Shown here: positions 1 to 7,992 of the stretch, piece after piece
Position numbering within the stretch: position 1 is the stretch's first letter
Layout of the letters: each line of letters opens with the position of its first letter
The notes under the pieces: model-generated
The model's database searches: none
What the model saw: the letters and a program-made list of their open reading frames with translations, nothing else
What the model was told of the DNA's origin: nothing
DNA from: Obrimoposthia wandeli
Lineage: Eukaryota
NCBI GenBank assembly: GCA_977020255.1
Contig: CDROCS010000864.1
Location: forward strand, 1-64,000
Reading direction: 5' to 3'
Length of the DNA stretch: 64,000 nucleotides
Program-made: the position numbers and the translations under genes

Positions 1-119
1 TTCCGGTTATCTTCGGCTTAATTTGGTTGTATGATCCCTCGTTAGTGTTTTACGCTGGAGCGGCAATTGCAGGTTTATCTTTGATACTGAGTCGTTTTGT
101 ACCCGTTAATTATAAATAG
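1..119 (+). CDS. 3' end of a membrane transporter, probably MFS (partial)
   Basis: Frame from base 3 reads PVIFGLIWLYDPSLVFYAGAAIAGLSLILSRFVPVNYK* (TAG 117-119); two hydrophobic helices typical of an MFS C-terminus. Confidence 0.6.
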   Translation, partial: PVIFGLIWLYDPSLVFYAGAAIAGLSLILSRFVPVNYK

Positions 120-187
120 CTTTGGTTCGATAGTGAATAGAAAGTACATAGCGCGTTGAATAACAGAATTGAATAACAGAATTCAGT

Positions 188-232
188 AACGACGAAGCTT
201 AGACATGATCAATACATCCAAGCTTCGTCGTT
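188..232. terminator. Bidirectional intrinsic terminator-like hairpin
   Basis: AACGACGAAGCTT ... AAGCTTCGTCGTT 13-bp perfect inverted repeat between convergent genes. Confidence 0.6.
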
Positions 233-288
233 TACCGTAGTCGTTACTTAAACGCTGTTGAATAACGCTTCATGACCATATCGTTAGT

Positions 289-1155
289 TTAGAAACCAAA
301 TTTACCGTTATTATTTTTCCAGGCATCTTTCGCTAGGATTGGTTCAATAATGTCCCAGTGCTCTACAATTTTGCTGTTTTCAATACGGAATAAATCATAG
401 AAAGAAACTGGTTTTCCGGCAAAGCTCCCCTCACTGATACTCAGTACAAAGTTACCTTCACCCAAGACGATATGATTTTGGCTATAAACCATTGTAATAC
501 CTTGTTTCGCCATCGCTTCCAGCGCCTGACCTAAACCTGAAAGGCCATCTGCAATGGCAGAGTTATGTTGCAGATAGTTAGCGTCACCGTCATCAATAAA
601 ACGACCAAGCTGGGAAAAATCACCTTTAACCAGGATCGTTTCAACAAAATCACCCACTAAGGCTTTATTTGCATCAGTCTTGTCTAAATCGCGCACTGCT
701 GTTGGACCATCTAGCTGAGTGCGACCACTTGGGTTGGCTACGCTTTTATCTGCCAAGTTATCCCAATGCTCGACGATTAGCCCATCTTCAAAACGAAACA
801 CATCAAAACCAGCTTTAGGGCCAAAGAAATTGTAGTCGGTATGGGTAAATACATAGTCACCATCTTGGAAAGCACGTTTAACATCAACCTTTGCACTTCC
901 TACTGGCAATGCTTGCAGTACCGCACCAAAACCAGCAAGACCATCCGCTACGGCGAGGTTATGTTGCGTGTAGTTATCTGGGTTCACATAAGCGGCAGCC
1001 TGTTGGTCACCTGTTTCAATACTATTAAGCAGGGCTACGGCTTTATCTTTGTTAGATAGACTCATTGTATTATCCTCAGTTGAAACTTGACTTGTGCATG
1101 CTGTAGTCACGAATACAGTAGCGGCTAACATCGCTGAAATACCTTTTTTCATCAT
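289..1155 (-). CDS. SnoaL-like/NTF2-family lipoprotein with two tandem domains
   Basis: Lipobox-like VTTAC; two repeats of Y.QHN..[V/I]ADG..GF/L and FD.FR.E..IVEHWD. Confidence 0.85.
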   Translation of the reverse strand: MMKKGISAMLAATVFVTTACTSQVSTEDNTMSLSNKDKAVALLNSIETGDQQAAAYVNPDNYTQHNLAVADGLAGFGAVLQALPVGSAKVDVKRAFQDGDYVFTHTDYNFFGPKAGFDVFRFEDGLIVEHWDNLADKSVANPSGRTQLDGPTAVRDLDKTDANKALVGDFVETILVKGDFSQLGRFIDDGDANYLQHNSAIADGLSGLGQALEAMAKQGITMVYSQNHIVLGEGNFVLSISEGSFAGKPVSFYDLFRIENSKIVEHWDIIEPILAKDAWKNNNGKFGF

Positions 1156-1236
1156 TCTTACCTCTCGTTGGAATGAGGTAATATTAATAAAAACAGCGAT
1201 GCTTTACATGGTCAAAATCAGAAGGAAAATGGTCAA

Positions 1237-2112
1237 TTACGAACCTTGATATTGTTTTTGAAAACGTGAGGGAGTAATCAAGGTATGCTTTTTAAAATAC
1301 TTAACAAAATTACTGGCATCCTCAAACCCTAATTCATAAGCAAGCTGCTGGGTTGGCATACCATGTAGTACCAGCCGTCTTTTCGCTTCTAAAATAGTGT
1401 AAGCATCGATGAGTTGTTTGGCGGTTTGATTGGTGGCTAACTTGCAGATCTGATTTAACGTTTTGTAGGTAGTGTGCAGCTGGTCTGCATAATAAGTCGC
1501 ATCTCGGGTGCGCTGGAAGTTGGCGGCAAGCAGGGCCACAAAGTCATTGAATTTACCCAGCTGACTTTGGTTTAATTTATCATGATGATTCTCTGGCATG
1601 ACTCGGCGCAACATCAATGACAGCGAAGAAAACAGCAACATGACAATCAGTTCATTAGATTCCTGGTGTATTAGCTCTTTGCTAATTTCAGCCAACAGTT
1701 TTTCACTGCTGCTCATGGTTGCTGCGTCAGGAATAAAAACTGGCTGATAGGCGTACTCAAGGTGCGTAGGCGTAAACTCGGGCAACCTCATATTCATGAG
1801 TGCTTGATCGATAAATGCTTGCGTAAACAGCAGTACTTTACCTTGCGGTTTGTGGCTAAAATCGAACGCATGCACTTGGTTTTTTTGGACAAATATAAAT
1901 GCGCCAGATTGATAGGGGTAGTTAACAAAGTCAATTAAATGAGCGCCATCACCTTCTTCTATATGGATAATCTGATGAAAATCGACTCGGTGTGGTAACG
2001 TCGGATTATGAGTCAGGCTATCTTTGCCTTGATACAGCGTTGTTAACTCAATCACTTCAATTTCGTTGTTTGCCGTTTTAGTGTGATTAAAGCCAACTTC
2101 AGGGATGTTCAT
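1237..2112 (-). CDS. AraC-family transcriptional regulator
   Basis: N-terminal cupin (HRVDFHQI..I..G.G.H.IDF); C-terminal IAYELGF.D.SNF.KYFKK-type HTH. Confidence 0.92.
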   Translation of the reverse strand: MNIPEVGFNHTKTANNEIEVIELTTLYQGKDSLTHNPTLPHRVDFHQIIHIEEGDGAHLIDFVNYPYQSGAFIFVQKNQVHAFDFSHKPQGKVLLFTQAFIDQALMNMRLPEFTPTHLEYAYQPVFIPDAATMSSSEKLLAEISKELIHQESNELIVMLLFSSLSLMLRRVMPENHHDKLNQSQLGKFNDFVALLAANFQRTRDATYYADQLHTTYKTLNQICKLATNQTAKQLIDAYTILEAKRRLVLHGMPTQQLAYELGFEDASNFVKYFKKHTLITPSRFQKQYQGS

Positions 2113-2382
2113 ATCGCAGCACTGCTCTTATAACATTTTGATTATATTGCAGCCTAATGCATATTGCTGCAATGCTCAAGCCACTGACTGTATATTGACA
2201 CCACGGCACAGGCATAAAAATGTTAGCAACTACGCTGTCTGAACCTAGGGTATTAACTCAGCCTTTAATGGTTAGTGGTAAAAACAAAACAGTACTGTAC
2301 ACTCACTAAATTGTTTTATTATCAGTAGTATGTCGATAACAATAAAGCTATAAACATTAATAAATTAAAGGACTAAACTATT

Positions 2383-2766
2383 ATGAAAATTCGTTTCCAT
2401 CTTATCGCAGCATTGGCTATTACTTCACTATTCGGTTGCGGCGACGGAGAGCAATCTCTAAAAGTAACGGCTAGTGCATATACCTCAAGTGTTGGCGAAA
2501 CAGATTCAACGCCAAACCTTGCTGCTTGGGGCGATATCCTTGAACCTGGTATGAAGTCTATTGCGGTGTCGAGAGACCTACTCGAAATGGGCCTTACTCA
2601 CAATCAAGAAGTAAGAATCGAAGGCTTTGAAGGGACTTACTTAGTACTGGATAAGATGAATAAGCGCTGGGAAAAGAAAATCGATATCTACATGGGTAAC
2701 GATGTTAAAAAAGCAAGACAATGGGGTAAGCAGGAAGTTGTTATCTATTGGACTGTAGAAGAATAA
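2383..2766 (+). CDS. 3D-domain lipoprotein
   Basis: LFGC lipobox; VTASAYTS...IAVSRDL...KIDIYM 3D-domain pattern. Confidence 0.85.
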   Translation: MKIRFHLIAALAITSLFGCGDGEQSLKVTASAYTSSVGETDSTPNLAAWGDILEPGMKSIAVSRDLLEMGLTHNQEVRIEGFEGTYLVLDKMNKRWEKKIDIYMGNDVKKARQWGKQEVVIYWTVEE

Positions 2767-2818
2767 AAATAGCATTAGCGTCCTACAAACGGGCTATATC
2801 GTAAATCGCAGGAATTAG

Positions 2819-2904
2819 AAAAGGCTCATCACTGCCCTTTATATACTTTCAACTAGAAAGAATGCAGCGTGATGAGCCTTTTATTTACCAGCGTTAAATC
2901 TTAA
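2819..2904. repeat. Copy A of a duplicated terminator region, hairpin with an enlarged loop
   Basis: AAAAGGCTCATCACT...GTGATGAGCCTTTTATTTACCAGCGTTAAATCTTAA nearly matches 5214-5268. Confidence 0.85.
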
Positions 2905-4136
2905 TCAACCTGCTTTACAGCAACGTAATCAAAGATAATACTTTCACCCTTAAATTCAGGGTCATTTTTCTCTGCTTCAGTCAGGATAGGAACAACTTTA
3001 ATATCCAGTTCTTCATCAGGAGCAGTAAACGTATTTACTACAATTTTCAGACTATCTGTATTTGCCTTACTTACATCAATAGACTTAGCGACTTTATACC
3101 CTTCAACAATCAGATCGAATGAACGCACTGTTGCATTTTTTGGTAATAGCATTTCAATTTGATATTTTGATCCTGTCGTTACATTAAAGACACTTTCTGA
3201 ACCACCATCTTTAGTAAAAAACGTTTTTTCAAAATTTGCGTTATCAGCATGATGATAAGAGTAACTTGCCGCATAATCATATCGGTCTTCCAACTTGAAC
3301 TTAACATCTTCAAACTGTGTCTCGATTAAAGTAACATAATTATTTTCACGGATAGTTTTATTAATCCAATCATTATAAGTAACTGCAGATGCATAGCCAG
3401 TACATGCACCACCCGCACCACTGGCAACACCCAAAAGAGTTAATTCTTTATTCTCTTTATCATAAGTATAAACACCACCACCTGAATCTCCCATCACAGG
3501 GCTCGTTTCAAGAGGCGTATCTGTAGCGATGAATAACTCTCCTTCTGAGGTCTCGCTTACGTCACGATCCATACAAACGGTGAGAATGTTTTCATTATAA
3601 CCACTCAGTTTATTGGTACCACACACTTCACCATTCCAACCGCCGTAACCGCACTGAACAACATCCATACCATCTTCAAGATCTGCAGTGTTGCCTTCAA
3701 AAATTTTAGCCGGAACCACATTTTCAAATGGCTCCGGTAAGCGCATCAACACTATATCTACGTTTTCGTTATCTATGTACCAAGTGTTTTTCGATCCCCA
3801 AGGCGTATCTTTGATACTATTCTCTTGTTGCATCCTGGTGTCAAAACGTGTGAAGCCTTTTTCTGTTACAGCCGTCATTTTTTCAACTTGTGCGCCACTT
3901 GTAGGACAATGTGCCGCAGTAATGACCCAATGATCTGCAACAATTGTACCTGAACAGCCGCCCCAACCAAAAACACGAACACTGGCACTTAATTCATTTT
4001 CTGCAATGAATTTTTTATAAGATTGAATATCTGCAGTAGCGACACTTTCATCACCTTGTCCAGCAACCACAAAAACCAGTGCATTTGCATTAAAAGACAC
4101 GGCTATAGCAAGACTTAATACCTTTAAATACTTCAT
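2901..4136 (-). CDS. Secreted trypsin-like (S1) serine protease with C-terminal beta-sandwich domain
   Basis: Signal peptide; GCSGTIVADHWVITAAHC (His), DIVLMRL (Asp), GDSGG (Ser). Confidence 0.9.
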   Translation of the reverse strand: MKYLKVLSLAIAVSFNANALVFVVAGQGDESVATADIQSYKKFIAENELSASVRVFGWGGCSGTIVADHWVITAAHCPTSGAQVEKMTAVTEKGFTRFDTRMQQENSIKDTPWGSKNTWYIDNENVDIVLMRLPEPFENVVPAKIFEGNTADLEDGMDVVQCGYGGWNGEVCGTNKLSGYNENILTVCMDRDVSETSEGELFIATDTPLETSPVMGDSGGGVYTYDKENKELTLLGVASGAGGACTGYASAVTYNDWINKTIRENNYVTLIETQFEDVKFKLEDRYDYAASYSYHHADNANFEKTFFTKDGGSESVFNVTTGSKYQIEMLLPKNATVRSFDLIVEGYKVAKSIDVSKANTDSLKIVVNTFTAPDEELDIKVVPILTEAEKNDPEFKGESIIFDYVAVKQVD

Positions 4137-4138
4137 AA

Positions 4139-4810
4139 TTATTTCACCTTATATAAAACAACTGCGTCTAGATATACTTCTTTACGAGCATCATTGCCTG
4201 AACCAAGACGTCGGAATATATTGACTTTGACCGGAGCTAATTCATTATTAAAGTCAATCACTGTTCGATGAGCTGTATAAGGAGAGCTTCCTTGTGCTAA
4301 CTGAAGATTTTGACATTCTCCACTTTGACATACTTCAACGCCATAGCCACCAAGGTTAGTATGTGTAAATAAGCGAGTTTGGTAATCCCCGACTTCTTTA
4401 GGATCGATAGTAAAGCTAATCACACCACTTTCTAAATCATCACTTAACGCTTTATAGCCTGCACTATATTCAACGCCTTCGGTATTTAGCCCTGTGGTTG
4501 AATCTTGAAAATGATAAGCATTTGTTTTTGCAACTTTACTATCCTCTGCAATGTCTTTTAATCCAGTAACTTGCCAGTCAGAAAATGCCTGACCTTTTAG
4601 GTTTACATCACTGATCGTATTACCGTTTGGGATCATGTAACTGTGTGAGCTAGAAACATCACGATCCCAATATCCTAGTGCACTCCATTCAGCTGGGTGA
4701 CTATACACTTGCTCTGTAACCAGTTCTGCAGAAAAAGCAGAAAATGTACTTAGCATGGAAACGATAACTATACATTTATTCATTATTAACTCCTTATTTA
4801 AAATAATCAT
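4139..4810 (-). CDS. Secreted hypothetical protein, beta-rich (possible carbohydrate-binding fold)
   Basis: Signal peptide MNKCIVIVSMLSTFSAFSA; stop lies 2 nt before the protease ATG; ends VYLDAVVLYK like galactose-binding-fold termini. Confidence 0.7.
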   Translation of the reverse strand: MIILNKELIMNKCIVIVSMLSTFSAFSAELVTEQVYSHPAEWSALGYWDRDVSSSHSYMIPNGNTISDVNLKGQAFSDWQVTGLKDIAEDSKVAKTNAYHFQDSTTGLNTEGVEYSAGYKALSDDLESGVISFTIDPKEVGDYQTRLFTHTNLGGYGVEVCQSGECQNLQLAQGSSPYTAHRTVIDFNNELAPVKVNIFRRLGSGNDARKEVYLDAVVLYKVK

Positions 4811-4860
4811 ATAAAGTCCTTATATAACAATAAGATGATAACAAAAAAATACGTAACACA

Positions 4861-4910
4861 TACAAACGCATACATCCGCTTACAAATGAATACATCTGCT
4901 TACAAATATA
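4861..4910. repeat. 2.5 x 20-bp tandem repeat with TACA every 10 bp
   Basis: TACAAACGCATACATCCGCT / TACAAATGAATACATCTGCT / TACAAATATA. Confidence 0.8.
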
Positions 4911-4920
4911 TATTTAAAAC

Positions 4921-5211
4921 ATCGAGTAGGGTGAGGCTTCCCAGTTATTGCACTGACGCCCTGTTAGATATGCCACCCTCAAGCACAGAATTGGTCTGAC
5001 TAAGTATAGGGCTTCGCGCTATTTTGGACGCTTACCCACCAATCCCGCCGAAACAGGTTACGGTTAGTTGTGTACATCTAAACTTCCTATGGCTTCCTTC
5101 AGACCTCACCGTTAGCCAGTGACGCCCTTGCCATTCGGATTATCTTCCCCTTAGTCAGGGTGATTTCACTTTCTTGCAAGTGAACGGGTTTGCCAGCTTT
5201 GCTGGGCAAAC
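4921..5211 (-). mobile_element. Internally deleted group IIC (class C) intron remnant, 291 nt, no RT ORF
   Basis: Minus strand starts GTTTGCCCAGC directly after a terminator U-tract; domain-I-like GAATGGCAAGGGCG...GGTGAGGTCTGAAGGAAGCC; ends CCCTACTCGAT; no domain V motif. Confidence 0.8.
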
Positions 5212-5247
5212 AAAAAAGGCTCATCACTTTGCAGTGATGAGCCTTTT
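5212..5247 (-). terminator. Intrinsic terminator of the ABC-F gene (intron target; copy B of the repeat)
   Basis: AAAAGGCTCATCACT-TTGC-AGTGATGAGCCTTTT. Confidence 0.9.
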
Positions 5248-5299
5248 ATTTACAAGCGTTAATCTTAAACCAAGCAACGTATTGCTTGGCTAAGAATTA

Positions 5300-6883
5300 T
5301 TATTTGCTTGCGATGTATTCTTCGTAAGTACCGTCGAAGTTAACGATGCCGTTTGGCGTAATATCCCAAATACGTGTAGCAACTGTAGATACGAACTCAC
5401 GGTCATGAGAGATGAATAGTAAAGTACCTTCATACTTCTCAAGCGCCATGTTTAATGACTCAATTGATTCCATATCCATGTGGTTAGTTGGTTCATCCAT
5501 TAATAATACATTTGGTTTTTGCATCATTAATTTACCGTAAAGCATACGGCCTTTTTCACCACCAGATAGAACGCTTACTTTCTTGCTAATGTCATCATTA
5601 GAGAATAATAAACGACCTAGGTAACCACGAACAGTTTGATCGTCATCGCCTTTTTCTTTCCACTGGTTCATCCACTCCATTAATGTCATATCTTCTTCGA
5701 AGTATGATTCATGGTCCTGTGCATAGTAAGCGATGTTTACGTTTTCAGACCATTTGTACTCACCCGCATCTGGAGTAAGTTCGTCTGCTAGCATACGCAT
5801 TAATGTTGTTTTACCAACACCATTGGTACCGATAATTGCGATACGCTCGCCAACTTCAACCATAGCTTTAAAGTCTGAGAATAACGGACCTTCATCAAAG
5901 CCTTTTGTTAGACCTTCAATTTCTAGTGCATTACGGTAAAGTTGTTTTTCTTGCTCGAAACGAATAAATGGCGTTTGACGGCTAGAAACTTTAACTTCAT
6001 CAAGCTCAATTTTATCAAGACGTTTAGCACGTGATGATGCTTGTTTTGCTTTAGATGCGTTTGCAGAGAAACGAGCAACGAATGCTTTAAGCTCTGTAAT
6101 TTGAGCTTCTTTTTTCGAGTTGCTTGTTAGTAGTTGCTCGCGTGCTAATGTAGCAGCAAACATGTAGTCATCATAGTTACCTGGGTAAACGCGTAGTTCA
6201 CCGAAATCAAGGTCAGCCATGTGAGTACAAACACTGTTTAAGAAATGACGATCATGCGAGATGATTACCATTGTACTTTGACGTGCGTTTAGTGTTTCTT
6301 CTAACCAGTCAATCGTTGCGATATCCAAGTTATTCGTTGGTTCGTCAAGTAGTAAGATATCTGGATCAGAGAATAGTGCTTGTGCTAGTAGTACACGTAG
6401 TTTCCAACCTGGAGCAACTTCGCTCATTAGGCCGTAATGTAGTTCTACTGGGATACCAACACCGATTAGTAGTTCACCTGCACGAGATTCAGCTGTGTAG
6501 CCGTCCATCTCTGCAAATTCACTTTCTAGATCGCCAACACGCATACCATCTGCTTCAGACATATCTGGGTTAGCATAAATTGCGTCACGTTCTTCTTTCA
6601 CAGTCCACATTTCTGCGTGGCCCATGATCACAGTATCAAGTACTGTATTTTTTTCGAATGCGAATTGATCCTGACGTAATTTACCAAGACGTTCGTTTTC
6701 ATCAAGTTTCACGTTACCAGAGCTTTGATCTAAATCGCCACCTAGGATTTTCATGAATGTTGATTTACCACAGCCGTTAGCACCGATTAAACCGTAACGG
6801 TTACCGCCACCGAACTTAACTGAGATATTTTCGAAAAGTGGCTTGGCACCGAACTGCATTGTAATATTTGCTGTGCTAATGAT
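5300..6883 (-). CDS. ybiT: ABC-F family ATPase, YbiT-like; start extended to a probable ATC at 6883
   Basis: Two ABC domains ([31 protein letters not shown]); frame extends upstream as (atc)[11 protein letters not shown] with AGGAG 8 nt before. Confidence 0.92.
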
Positions 6884-7769: not shown

Positions 7770-7992
7770 GAAGGGTTCGCATTACAAAAAAAGGAACTGG
7801 ATTGTAATACAATGAGTAATATTTTCATCTACTTTTTAACGGTAAAATAAAATCAATGACCAGACAGTTAATACGTGTTAATCGATTTCGCTAAATTAAT
7901 CGCAAGCTAACGCGTTAAACGCGGGTTTCAAAAATAGCACGACAGCAATGAATAGCGTCAATAAGGCGGGTTTGATAGGAACACCAAAGCCG

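Follow-up and report, generated by a model that had tools for sequence, protein, structure and literature searches.

How a bacterial chromosome gains genes beside a conserved core gene, with no recognisable mobile element and with the terminator of the core gene present on both sides of the newcomers, is the question raised by a locus in a 64,000-nt stretch of DNA (positions 1 to 64,000 of contig CDROCS010000864.1, assembly GCA_977020255.1, filed under Obrimoposthia wandeli), which is referred to in the following as the window. The contig belongs to a strain of Moritella within a 1.35-Gb mixed assembly that is rich in bacterial contigs. In the window, a block comprising the genes of a secreted trypsin-like serine protease and a secreted partner protein as well as a small group II intron is situated next to ybiT, which encodes an ABC-F ATPase, and is bracketed by two copies of the ybiT terminator. 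Many bacterial sites of gene gain are devoid of any trace of a mobile element, and the first insertion at such sites is poorly understood; here, the states before and after the insertion are both available at base resolution. The locus is a real and recent gene gain with clean boundaries at a terminator that has repeatedly served as a hot spot, and with modest probability it may exemplify a general mechanism.

The YbiT protein of the window shares 95% identity with that of a Moritella metagenome-assembled genome, and on the DNA level ybiT is 93-99% identical to its counterparts in the 13 Moritella genomes (G001 to G013) that form the comparison set. Closest among these is G002, with 97.7-98.6% nucleotide identity on both sides of the insertion.

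The duplicated ybiT terminator

The duplicated unit comprises the hairpin of the ybiT terminator plus 21 nt and is found as copy A (2819-2904) and copy B (5214-5268), i.e. at the very places where near-identical direct repeats bracketing the block had been noticed in an earlier reading that was made without database searches (hereafter the sequence-only reading). The left arm AAAAGGCTCATCACT is identical in 15 of 15 positions between 2819-2833 and 5214-5228, and the right arm with its flank (GTGATGAGCCTTTTATTTAC...ATCTTAA; 2869-2904 and 5234-5268) differs by a single substitution and a 1-nt indel. For the 20-mer GTGATGAGCCTTTTATTTAC, two occurrences in the window contrast with none in 100 shuffles.

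Copy B is the working terminator of ybiT. It begins 31 nt past the ybiT stop codon and features a 15-bp stem (arms 5214-5228 and 5233-5247), a 4-nt loop, a T-run at 5212-5217 on the minus strand and a 21-nt flank at 5248-5268, with a folding energy of -27.7 kcal/mol. Copy A (arms 2819-2832 and 2869-2882, flank of 21-22 nt at 2883-2904) carries the stem of copy B around a loop of 36 nt, folds with -29.5 kcal/mol, and now ends both the protease gene on the minus strand and the small lipoprotein-like ('3D-like') gene on the plus strand. Homology links its loop to the long one in the single-copy terminator of G002, and the left flank CGTAAATCGCAG is common to both sites as well. The stop codon TAA of the protease (2901-2903, minus strand) falls within the last letters of copy A, in agreement with the earlier claim that the repeat is the ybiT terminator and that copy A begins at the protease stop.

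In the whole 1.35-Gb assembly, the complete hairpin exists only as copies A and B, which excludes the common dispersed terminator that the sequence-only reading had named as a threat to its own interpretation, and no further duplicated terminators were found within the 64-kb window. A dispersed repeat resembling repetitive extragenic palindromic (REP) elements was also rejected as a candidate, since the hairpin is confined to the ybiT locus in each genome.

The empty site and the age of the insertion

The gene order in G002 is araC-type regulator, 3D-like gene, one hairpin and ybiT, and window positions 2905-5211 are missing from this genome both at the locus and genome-wide. The single terminator of G002 combines the left flank of copy A (CGTAAATCGCAG) with the right flank of copy B (ATCTTAAACCAAGCAACG...). 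In addition, a contig from an unrelated public run joins position 2772 to 5237 via 169 other letters and represents the same empty allele; the sample in question also holds low-depth pieces of the cassette. The empty site that had been deduced from the window by the sequence-only reading (3D gene, one terminator, ybiT) is therefore present in G002 as well as in an independent run. Moreover, the alignment of congeneric genomes, which that reading had put forward as a check, reveals a site with a single terminator copy, and the cassette is missing from the ybiT site in 13 of the 13 other Moritella genomes.

GCGTTAA is common to copies A and B, and the corresponding letters are GCTATAAA in G002 and GCGATAAA in the outgroups. 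Since the base shared by A and B does not occur in G002, the duplication postdates the divergence of the two lineages, and G002 represents the ancestral empty site rather than the scar of an excision. What is shown here comprises the insertion and its boundaries, the existence of the empty site, the succession of events and the recurrence described further below.

The inserted genes

The inserted cargo, which is missing from G002, spans 2016 bp on the minus strand (2905-4920). The protease gene (2901-4136, minus strand), whose stop codon lies inside copy A, encodes 411 amino acids with a Pfam Trypsin match (1.3e-14, residues 51-258) that places the product among the S1 serine proteases. The AAHC, DIVL and GDSGG motifs are kept in an alignment of three sequences, and an extra C-terminal region of about 150 amino acids is unassigned to a family. 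Compared to its homologue in G009, the protease has 80% amino acid identity and an intact C-terminus. The partner gene (4139-4783, minus strand) is co-linear with the protease gene in G009 too. Its listed open reading frame (ORF) extends to 4810, but the most likely start is the second ATG (4783), which is preceded by AAGGAG and yields a protein of about 214 amino acids. The partner matched no Pfam or NCBIfam family, an atlas search gave nothing secure, a comparison with the C-terminal region of the protease found no similarity, and the single-sequence fold was unusable with a predicted local distance difference test (pLDDT) value of 42.

The upstream or regulatory region of the cargo (4784-4920, minus strand) is the end that adjoins the intron. 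Upstream of the partner gene it contains tandem 20-nt units at 4861-4900 with TTTGTAAGC-type motifs, a motif that recurs upstream of the G009 homologue and probably binds a regulator. A consensus sigma-70 site was not found in 4784-4920.

With respect to its origin, the cargo has a GC content at third codon positions of 25-27%, compared to 32-45% in the neighbouring genes. Relatives of the gene pair were found only in G009 and in one metagenome contig of the G009 species, where the pair resides in the same context as in G009. The cargo shares 76% nucleotide and 80% amino acid identity with G009, as against about 94% nucleotide identity of ybiT between the two genomes. In G009 the pair lies in a different variable region and possesses its own terminator about 40 nt past the stop codon. 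On the contrary, the homology of the window cargo to G009 ends at the stop codon, the TAA of which belongs to the repeat; hence, the cargo has lost its own terminator and makes use of copy A. At the other end, about 110 nt of upstream DNA including the repeats are kept, and the homology to the G009 locus reaches position 4888. These upstream repeats, which are also seen in G009, suggest that the cargo was transferred as DNA and not as a copied mRNA. The hunt for a donor or for closer relatives of the protease returned one cluster in a word-indexed protein search, nothing in a first metagenome scan and one contig in a second. The genes flanking the pair in G009 are scattered in other genomes, without a clean second empty site.

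The group II intron behind copy B

Directly after the T-run of copy B lies a class C group II mini-intron of 291 nt (4921-5211, minus strand), both ends of which are intact whereas the interior is deleted. The Rfam model group-II-D1D4-3 (RF02001) matches it with 50.4 bits (E 1.8e-8, gathering score 32, model positions 1-170), which places group II domains I-IV at 4955-5122. Positions 5212-4934 correspond to the first 278 nt of a full-length intron on another contig that encodes a reverse transcriptase (RT), with 80% identity, and the 21-mer at 4937-4917 is identical to the last 17 nt of this full-length intron and the four letters that follow. A deletion at a GCCT microhomology removed the interior together with domains V/VI and the RT ORF and left only the last 17 nt of the 3' part. 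Full-length relatives on other contigs match RF00029 with 46.4 bits and contain an ORF of at least 347 amino acids with an RT motif. The mini-intron is thus a decayed class C member that cannot act alone. The intron remnant described by the sequence-only reading is thus an intron indeed, although not a mere remnant, given its two intact ends and internal deletion. Around 14 related class C introns (about 80% identity to that of the window) are distributed over the G000 contigs C2331, C6357, C3840, C998, C5135, C1688, C5920 and C3739, among them two in head-to-tail tandem, spaced by about 2.1 kb, that possess domain V/VI and an RT ORF.

Class C introns habitually insert behind terminators, and the related introns in G005, G007 and G013 each follow directly upon the T-run of a different terminator. 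The 3' exon of the window intron is the upstream region of the cargo, and hence the intron arrived after or with the cargo. It is read as a bystander and not as the vehicle of insertion; the intron as carrier was rejected on the grounds that its true 3' end adjoins the cargo. A class C intron that settled behind a freshly duplicated terminator and subsequently decayed calls for caution against regarding such introns as the cause of an insertion.

A recurrent insertion site in Moritella

Insertions have repeatedly struck the spacer beside ybiT, a hot spot in which the hairpin serves as the entry point. In G004, G005, G010 and G012 the spacer is empty and window positions 118-5211 are all missing; these genomes feature a gene for a transporter of the major facilitator superfamily (MFS), the end of which corresponds to window positions 1-118, followed by 40-65 nt and then by the hairpin and ybiT. 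The older variable content of the hot spot in the window (118-2818) consists of a SnoaL-like gene (289-1155), an AraC regulator gene (1237-2112) and the 3D-like gene, none of which is present where the spacer is empty. In G006 and G011, the spacer is occupied by ABM-like, SnoaL and AraC genes, and G002 harbours these along with a 3D-like gene. The protease pair is found at the ybiT hot spot in the window strain only. In G008 (L110, 6335-7821) and G009 (L116), the hot spot holds a LysR regulator gene and a gene of the PACE family (chlorhexidine-efflux type, BTP).

A second, independent event is apparent in G006 (L107) and G011 (L108), where the order is MFS gene, hairpin copy, module, hairpin and ybiT. 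In relatives, different cargo thus stands between hairpin copies, an outcome that the sequence-only reading had named in support of its proposal. In G006 and G011, the duplicated stretch consists of the hairpin and about 11 nt towards the MFS gene, with its other edge inside the T-run. The edges of the two duplications consequently differ, as the window duplication consists of the hairpin and 21 nt on the ybiT side and that of G006 and G011 extends to the opposite side.

Further variation surrounds the hairpin. In G003 (L113, about 7770-7800), its left arm is replaced by another terminator, with the junction within the loop. A diverged hairpin copy with an ATTTAC-type flank on the ybiT side ends a 705-amino acid gene at a distance of 3.7-22 kb from ybiT; it was located in G006 (L107, oriented 2234-2263) and G013 (L117:2516-2545), and in G003, G008 and G009 by coordinates only. 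In G013, the diverged copy lies about 5 kb from ybiT, whose own terminator is a different hairpin in this genome. The diverged copy may represent an older duplication that brackets a larger island. The central base of the loop is A in G005, G006, G009, G010 and G012 but T in G008, G011 and the distal copies of G006 and G011; this A/T alternation at the loop centre corresponds to an inverted loop state and is a sign of palindrome-associated strand switching.

Mobility enzymes and attachment sites

In and beside the block there is no integrase or transposase, as the sequence-only reading had stated, and 2905-5211 contains no ORF or fragment of a tyrosine or serine recombinase; the block has only two ORFs, those of the protease and of the secreted protein without a family. 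Inverted repeats were not found at the ends of the cargo, and the duplication of 55-86 nt is not the short, fixed target duplication of a transposon or insertion sequence. Integron integrases (TIGR02249 above cut-off) are encoded by 6 of the 13 Moritella genomes, in all cases more than 1 Mb from ybiT, and none above cut-off was detected in G002, G006 and G011. Likewise, no match to an integron integrase or a tyrosine recombinase was obtained on the window contig. Regarding the attC sites of integron cassettes, GTTAAAT is present at a single side of copy A and GTTAATC in copy B, the inverse core being missing beyond the stem; no attC-like Rfam match was obtained, and the boundaries in the window coincide with the T-run and with a point 21 nt away from the stem, not with an attC core.

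An integron/attC reading was rejected because of the lack of paired RYYYAAC/GTTRRRY sequences, the variable edges and the distribution of the integrases. In particular, edges that differ between independent events argue against a site-specific crossover. The gene-cassette route with terminators as attachment sites, which the sequence-only reading had ventured, is not borne out by these differing edges, by the missing attC cores and the missing linkage to an integron integrase, or by an intron that is not part of the entry.

Mechanism of insertion

The reading preferred here, to which about an even chance is given, is a recombinase-independent, in-place insertion at the hairpin on the level of microhomology, presumably by break-and-join. 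A 2.0-kb module comprising upstream region, partner gene and protease gene, and lacking a terminator of its own, would have entered directly behind the ybiT terminator after the split from the nearest sequenced relative and without a dedicated recombinase. DNA ends at or around the hairpin could have arisen from a staggered break, or else from a replication stall followed by a template switch across the palindrome, and would have been joined to the foreign fragment at tiny matches, namely TAA/TTAA at the protease stop and the T-run at the opposite side. If both ends kept the hairpin, then the hairpin and 21 nt would have been copied to both sides, followed by fill-in. The distal copy A would then terminate the protease gene and the converging 3D-like gene, and the proximal copy B would still terminate ybiT. 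Later, a class C group II intron would have entered behind copy B and lost its interior, resulting in the 291-nt mini-intron. That the cargo ends exactly at a stop codon overlapping the repeat points to a junction of the microhomology type.

Several points weigh against an in-place insertion. The loops differ, with 36 nt in copy A compared to 4-6 nt in copy B, so that a simple target duplication needs a later deletion in the loop of copy B. Moreover, the loop of copy B, TTTGCA, resembles the TTTACA of G004 and G007, which fits import from another strain, and neither an intermediate nor a donor genome was found. To our knowledge, a duplication of 55-86 nt does not arise from any characterised bacterial end-joining route, and the fact that one hairpin was used more than once could be due to a specific factor that has so far escaped notice.

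Of the competing explanations, the strongest is possible but doubtful: an anchor-assisted import, by homology-facilitated illegitimate recombination or by a Campbell-type single crossover of a circularised fragment. A conspecific donor with ybiT, terminator and cargo in this order would have paired with the resident ybiT and terminator, and the far end would have recombined illegitimately at a point 21 nt upstream of the terminator in the recipient, which makes copy B the hairpin of the donor and copy A that of the recipient. Such an import would account for the resident-type long loop of copy A, as in G002, next to the short loop of copy B that is typical of other Moritella, and for a far junction at a match of 3-4 nt. 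Occupied and empty alleles share samples, so that donors and recipients meet, and the newest module stands nearest to the conserved gene, as in Vibrio cholerae arrays (PMC5361080). However, the 24 differences to G002 in 1757 positions of ybiT are evenly spread without a tract beside copy B, although a very close donor would be traceless. In addition, the derived base that A and B share and G002 lacks demands a donor closer than G002 and a loop deletion anyway, the cargo was found beside ybiT in no genome but that of the window, and the original insertion would merely be moved one step back. Very unlikely, in turn, is a site-specific recombinase in trans, integron-like or other, that uses the hairpin and treats the modules as cassettes excisable as circles. 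Behind every module stands a hairpin copy, the modules run in the direction of ybiT, copies of one hairpin separate at least two modules and perhaps an older third (indicated by the T'' copy that G006 has upstream of its MFS gene), and integron integrases do exist in six of the genomes; yet besides the varying edges, the missing core pairs and the lack of IntI above cut-off in G002, G006 and G011 and near ybiT anywhere, the hairpin is found nowhere else in the genomes, the modules are multi-gene units that include genes of either orientation and bring regulatory regions of their own, and no circles or excision joints were seen among the contigs examined, which would miss rare ones.

The proposal that group II intron machinery brought the cargo, through a template switch of the RT onto a cellular transcript or through recombination between intron copies, is highly improbable. 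It can invoke the exact position of the intron between copy B and the cargo, the targeting of terminators by class C introns and the many related copies, some of them full-length and RT-encoding, in the same sample, as well as the literature on IIC-attC introns, in which a model for the genesis of integron cassettes has been developed (PMC3001079). On the other hand, a genuine 3' end that has the cargo as its 3' exon is what ordinary homing into a pre-existing junction of terminator and cargo would yield, the duplication in G006 and G011 is without an intron trace, the kept upstream repeats and the end at a stop codon without its own terminator are the opposite of a copied mRNA, and the duplication of the terminator is left unexplained by the model. 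There is likewise very little probability that the cassette was ancestral to the window strain and G002 and that G002 lost it by recombination between the repeats, leaving the empty site as a scar. Direct repeats of 35-55 nt can mediate deletions, and the product would resemble G002 in combining the loop of copy A with the ybiT-side flank of copy B; nevertheless, the flank of G002 is only one step from that of the outgroups and is without the base shared by A and B, none of the 13 other genomes has the cassette at the site, and one gain, one loss and a conversion between the copies would be needed. Finally, an assembly artefact, in which a repeat of 35-55 nt misjoined a cassette from elsewhere, is barely credible. 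The assembly is indeed large and mixed and contains several related strains, but Logan contigs of the probable source run bridge the junction from the 3D side through copy A into the protease gene (2734-2949) and that of cargo and mini-intron (2920-4969) with zero differences, and a food-metagenome run of another study bridges copy A into the protease gene (2814-2992) with one difference; the joint of intron, copy B and ybiT was not bridged among the matches listed.

Relation to known systems and generality

The locus is a recombinase-free hot-spot islet with an unusual duplication of a whole terminator. It resembles the 'minimal mobile elements' of Neisseria and chromosomal hot spots of horizontal gene transfer in its conserved flanks (here the MFS gene and ybiT), which enclose strain-varying or no cargo, and in the lack of mobility genes; since alleles share samples here, exchange via flanking homology is plausible. 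In contrast to these elements, the entry point is one hairpin and its duplication recurs. We know of no description in which a minimal mobile element leaves the terminator of its neighbour duplicated on both sides. Integrase islands with attL and attR at a tRNA gene, a tmRNA gene or the 3' end of another gene are similar in their direct repeats of tens of nt derived from the 3' end of a resident gene, but the 2.4 kb examined here contain no integrase or remnant thereof, the repeats comprise a whole hairpin with differing loops, and their edges are inconstant. Modules that end in an imperfect hairpin, are bracketed by copies in direct repeat and have the youngest member beside the fixed point are also characteristic of integron cassettes; however, an intI/attI platform and attC cores are missing here, the boundaries are variable, and the modules are multi-gene, include genes of either orientation and bring along regulatory DNA of their own. 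The effector-immunity arrays of the type VI secretion system in V. cholerae, which are proposed to be built by homology-facilitated illegitimate recombination (PMC5361080), correspond to the locus in the addition of modules beside a conserved anchor, the displacement of older modules, the lack of an integrase and a far junction at a short match, but differ in that here the anchor gene has no detectable imported tract and a terminator instead of an orphan gene is retained. As to the IIC-attC model (PMC3001079), the 291-nt element is an intron of this kind after the T-run of a terminator, but it is secondary here, has lost domain V/VI and the RT and explains neither the cargo nor the duplication.

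In 80 loci of other genera, no duplication of the ybiT terminator was detected and only REP-type repeats matched. A self-comparison of 1.67 Mb of loci returned one similar case, the Pseudoalteromonas locus L023. There, a bidirectional terminator of 30 nt is duplicated with 93% identity (1975-2004 and 3699-3728), and the hairpins bracket a gene pair for a 2OG-Fe(II) oxygenase and a TM2-domain protein, flanked by a TonB-dependent receptor gene and msrA. Searching the literature by phrase for terminator duplication retrieved no description of a natural insertion of such kind.

It seems unlikely, although conceivable, that the duplication of a whole hairpin is the signature of a general, hitherto undescribed route of gene gain in marine gammaproteobacteria. 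On such a route, intrinsic terminators between converging genes would break or stall in a structure-dependent manner, both ends would keep the hairpin, and foreign DNA would be captured in between. This general reading draws on at least two events at the ybiT hairpin (window; G006 and G011), a possible third indicated by T'', and the Pseudoalteromonas case. If it were true, new genes would arrive with a ready-made terminator and leave their neighbours unharmed: the neighbours would keep their stop signal and the newcomer would gain one. A simple sequence signature for recent gene gains would also become available. Terminators between converging genes would then be preferred, self-repairing landing pads, a property that would help to explain the persistence of hot spots.

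Neighbouring genes

The fixed side of the hot spot is the conserved core gene ybiT (5300-6859, minus strand; NCBIfam PRK15064, 982 bits). Its ORF covers positions 9-527 of the 530-position model, the N-terminus being about 8 residues short (window 6836-6859). On the other side, the 3D-like gene (2383-2766, plus strand) converges on copy A and is the resident neighbour at the empty site, as it adjoins the single terminator in G002; its match to the Pfam 3D domain (E 0.028) is below the cut-off. In G002, this gene is accompanied by its own terminator and about 75 nt that are missing from the window (window 2767-2818 compared to L106:5850-5976), and the 3D-like gene of the window depends on copy A as its terminator.

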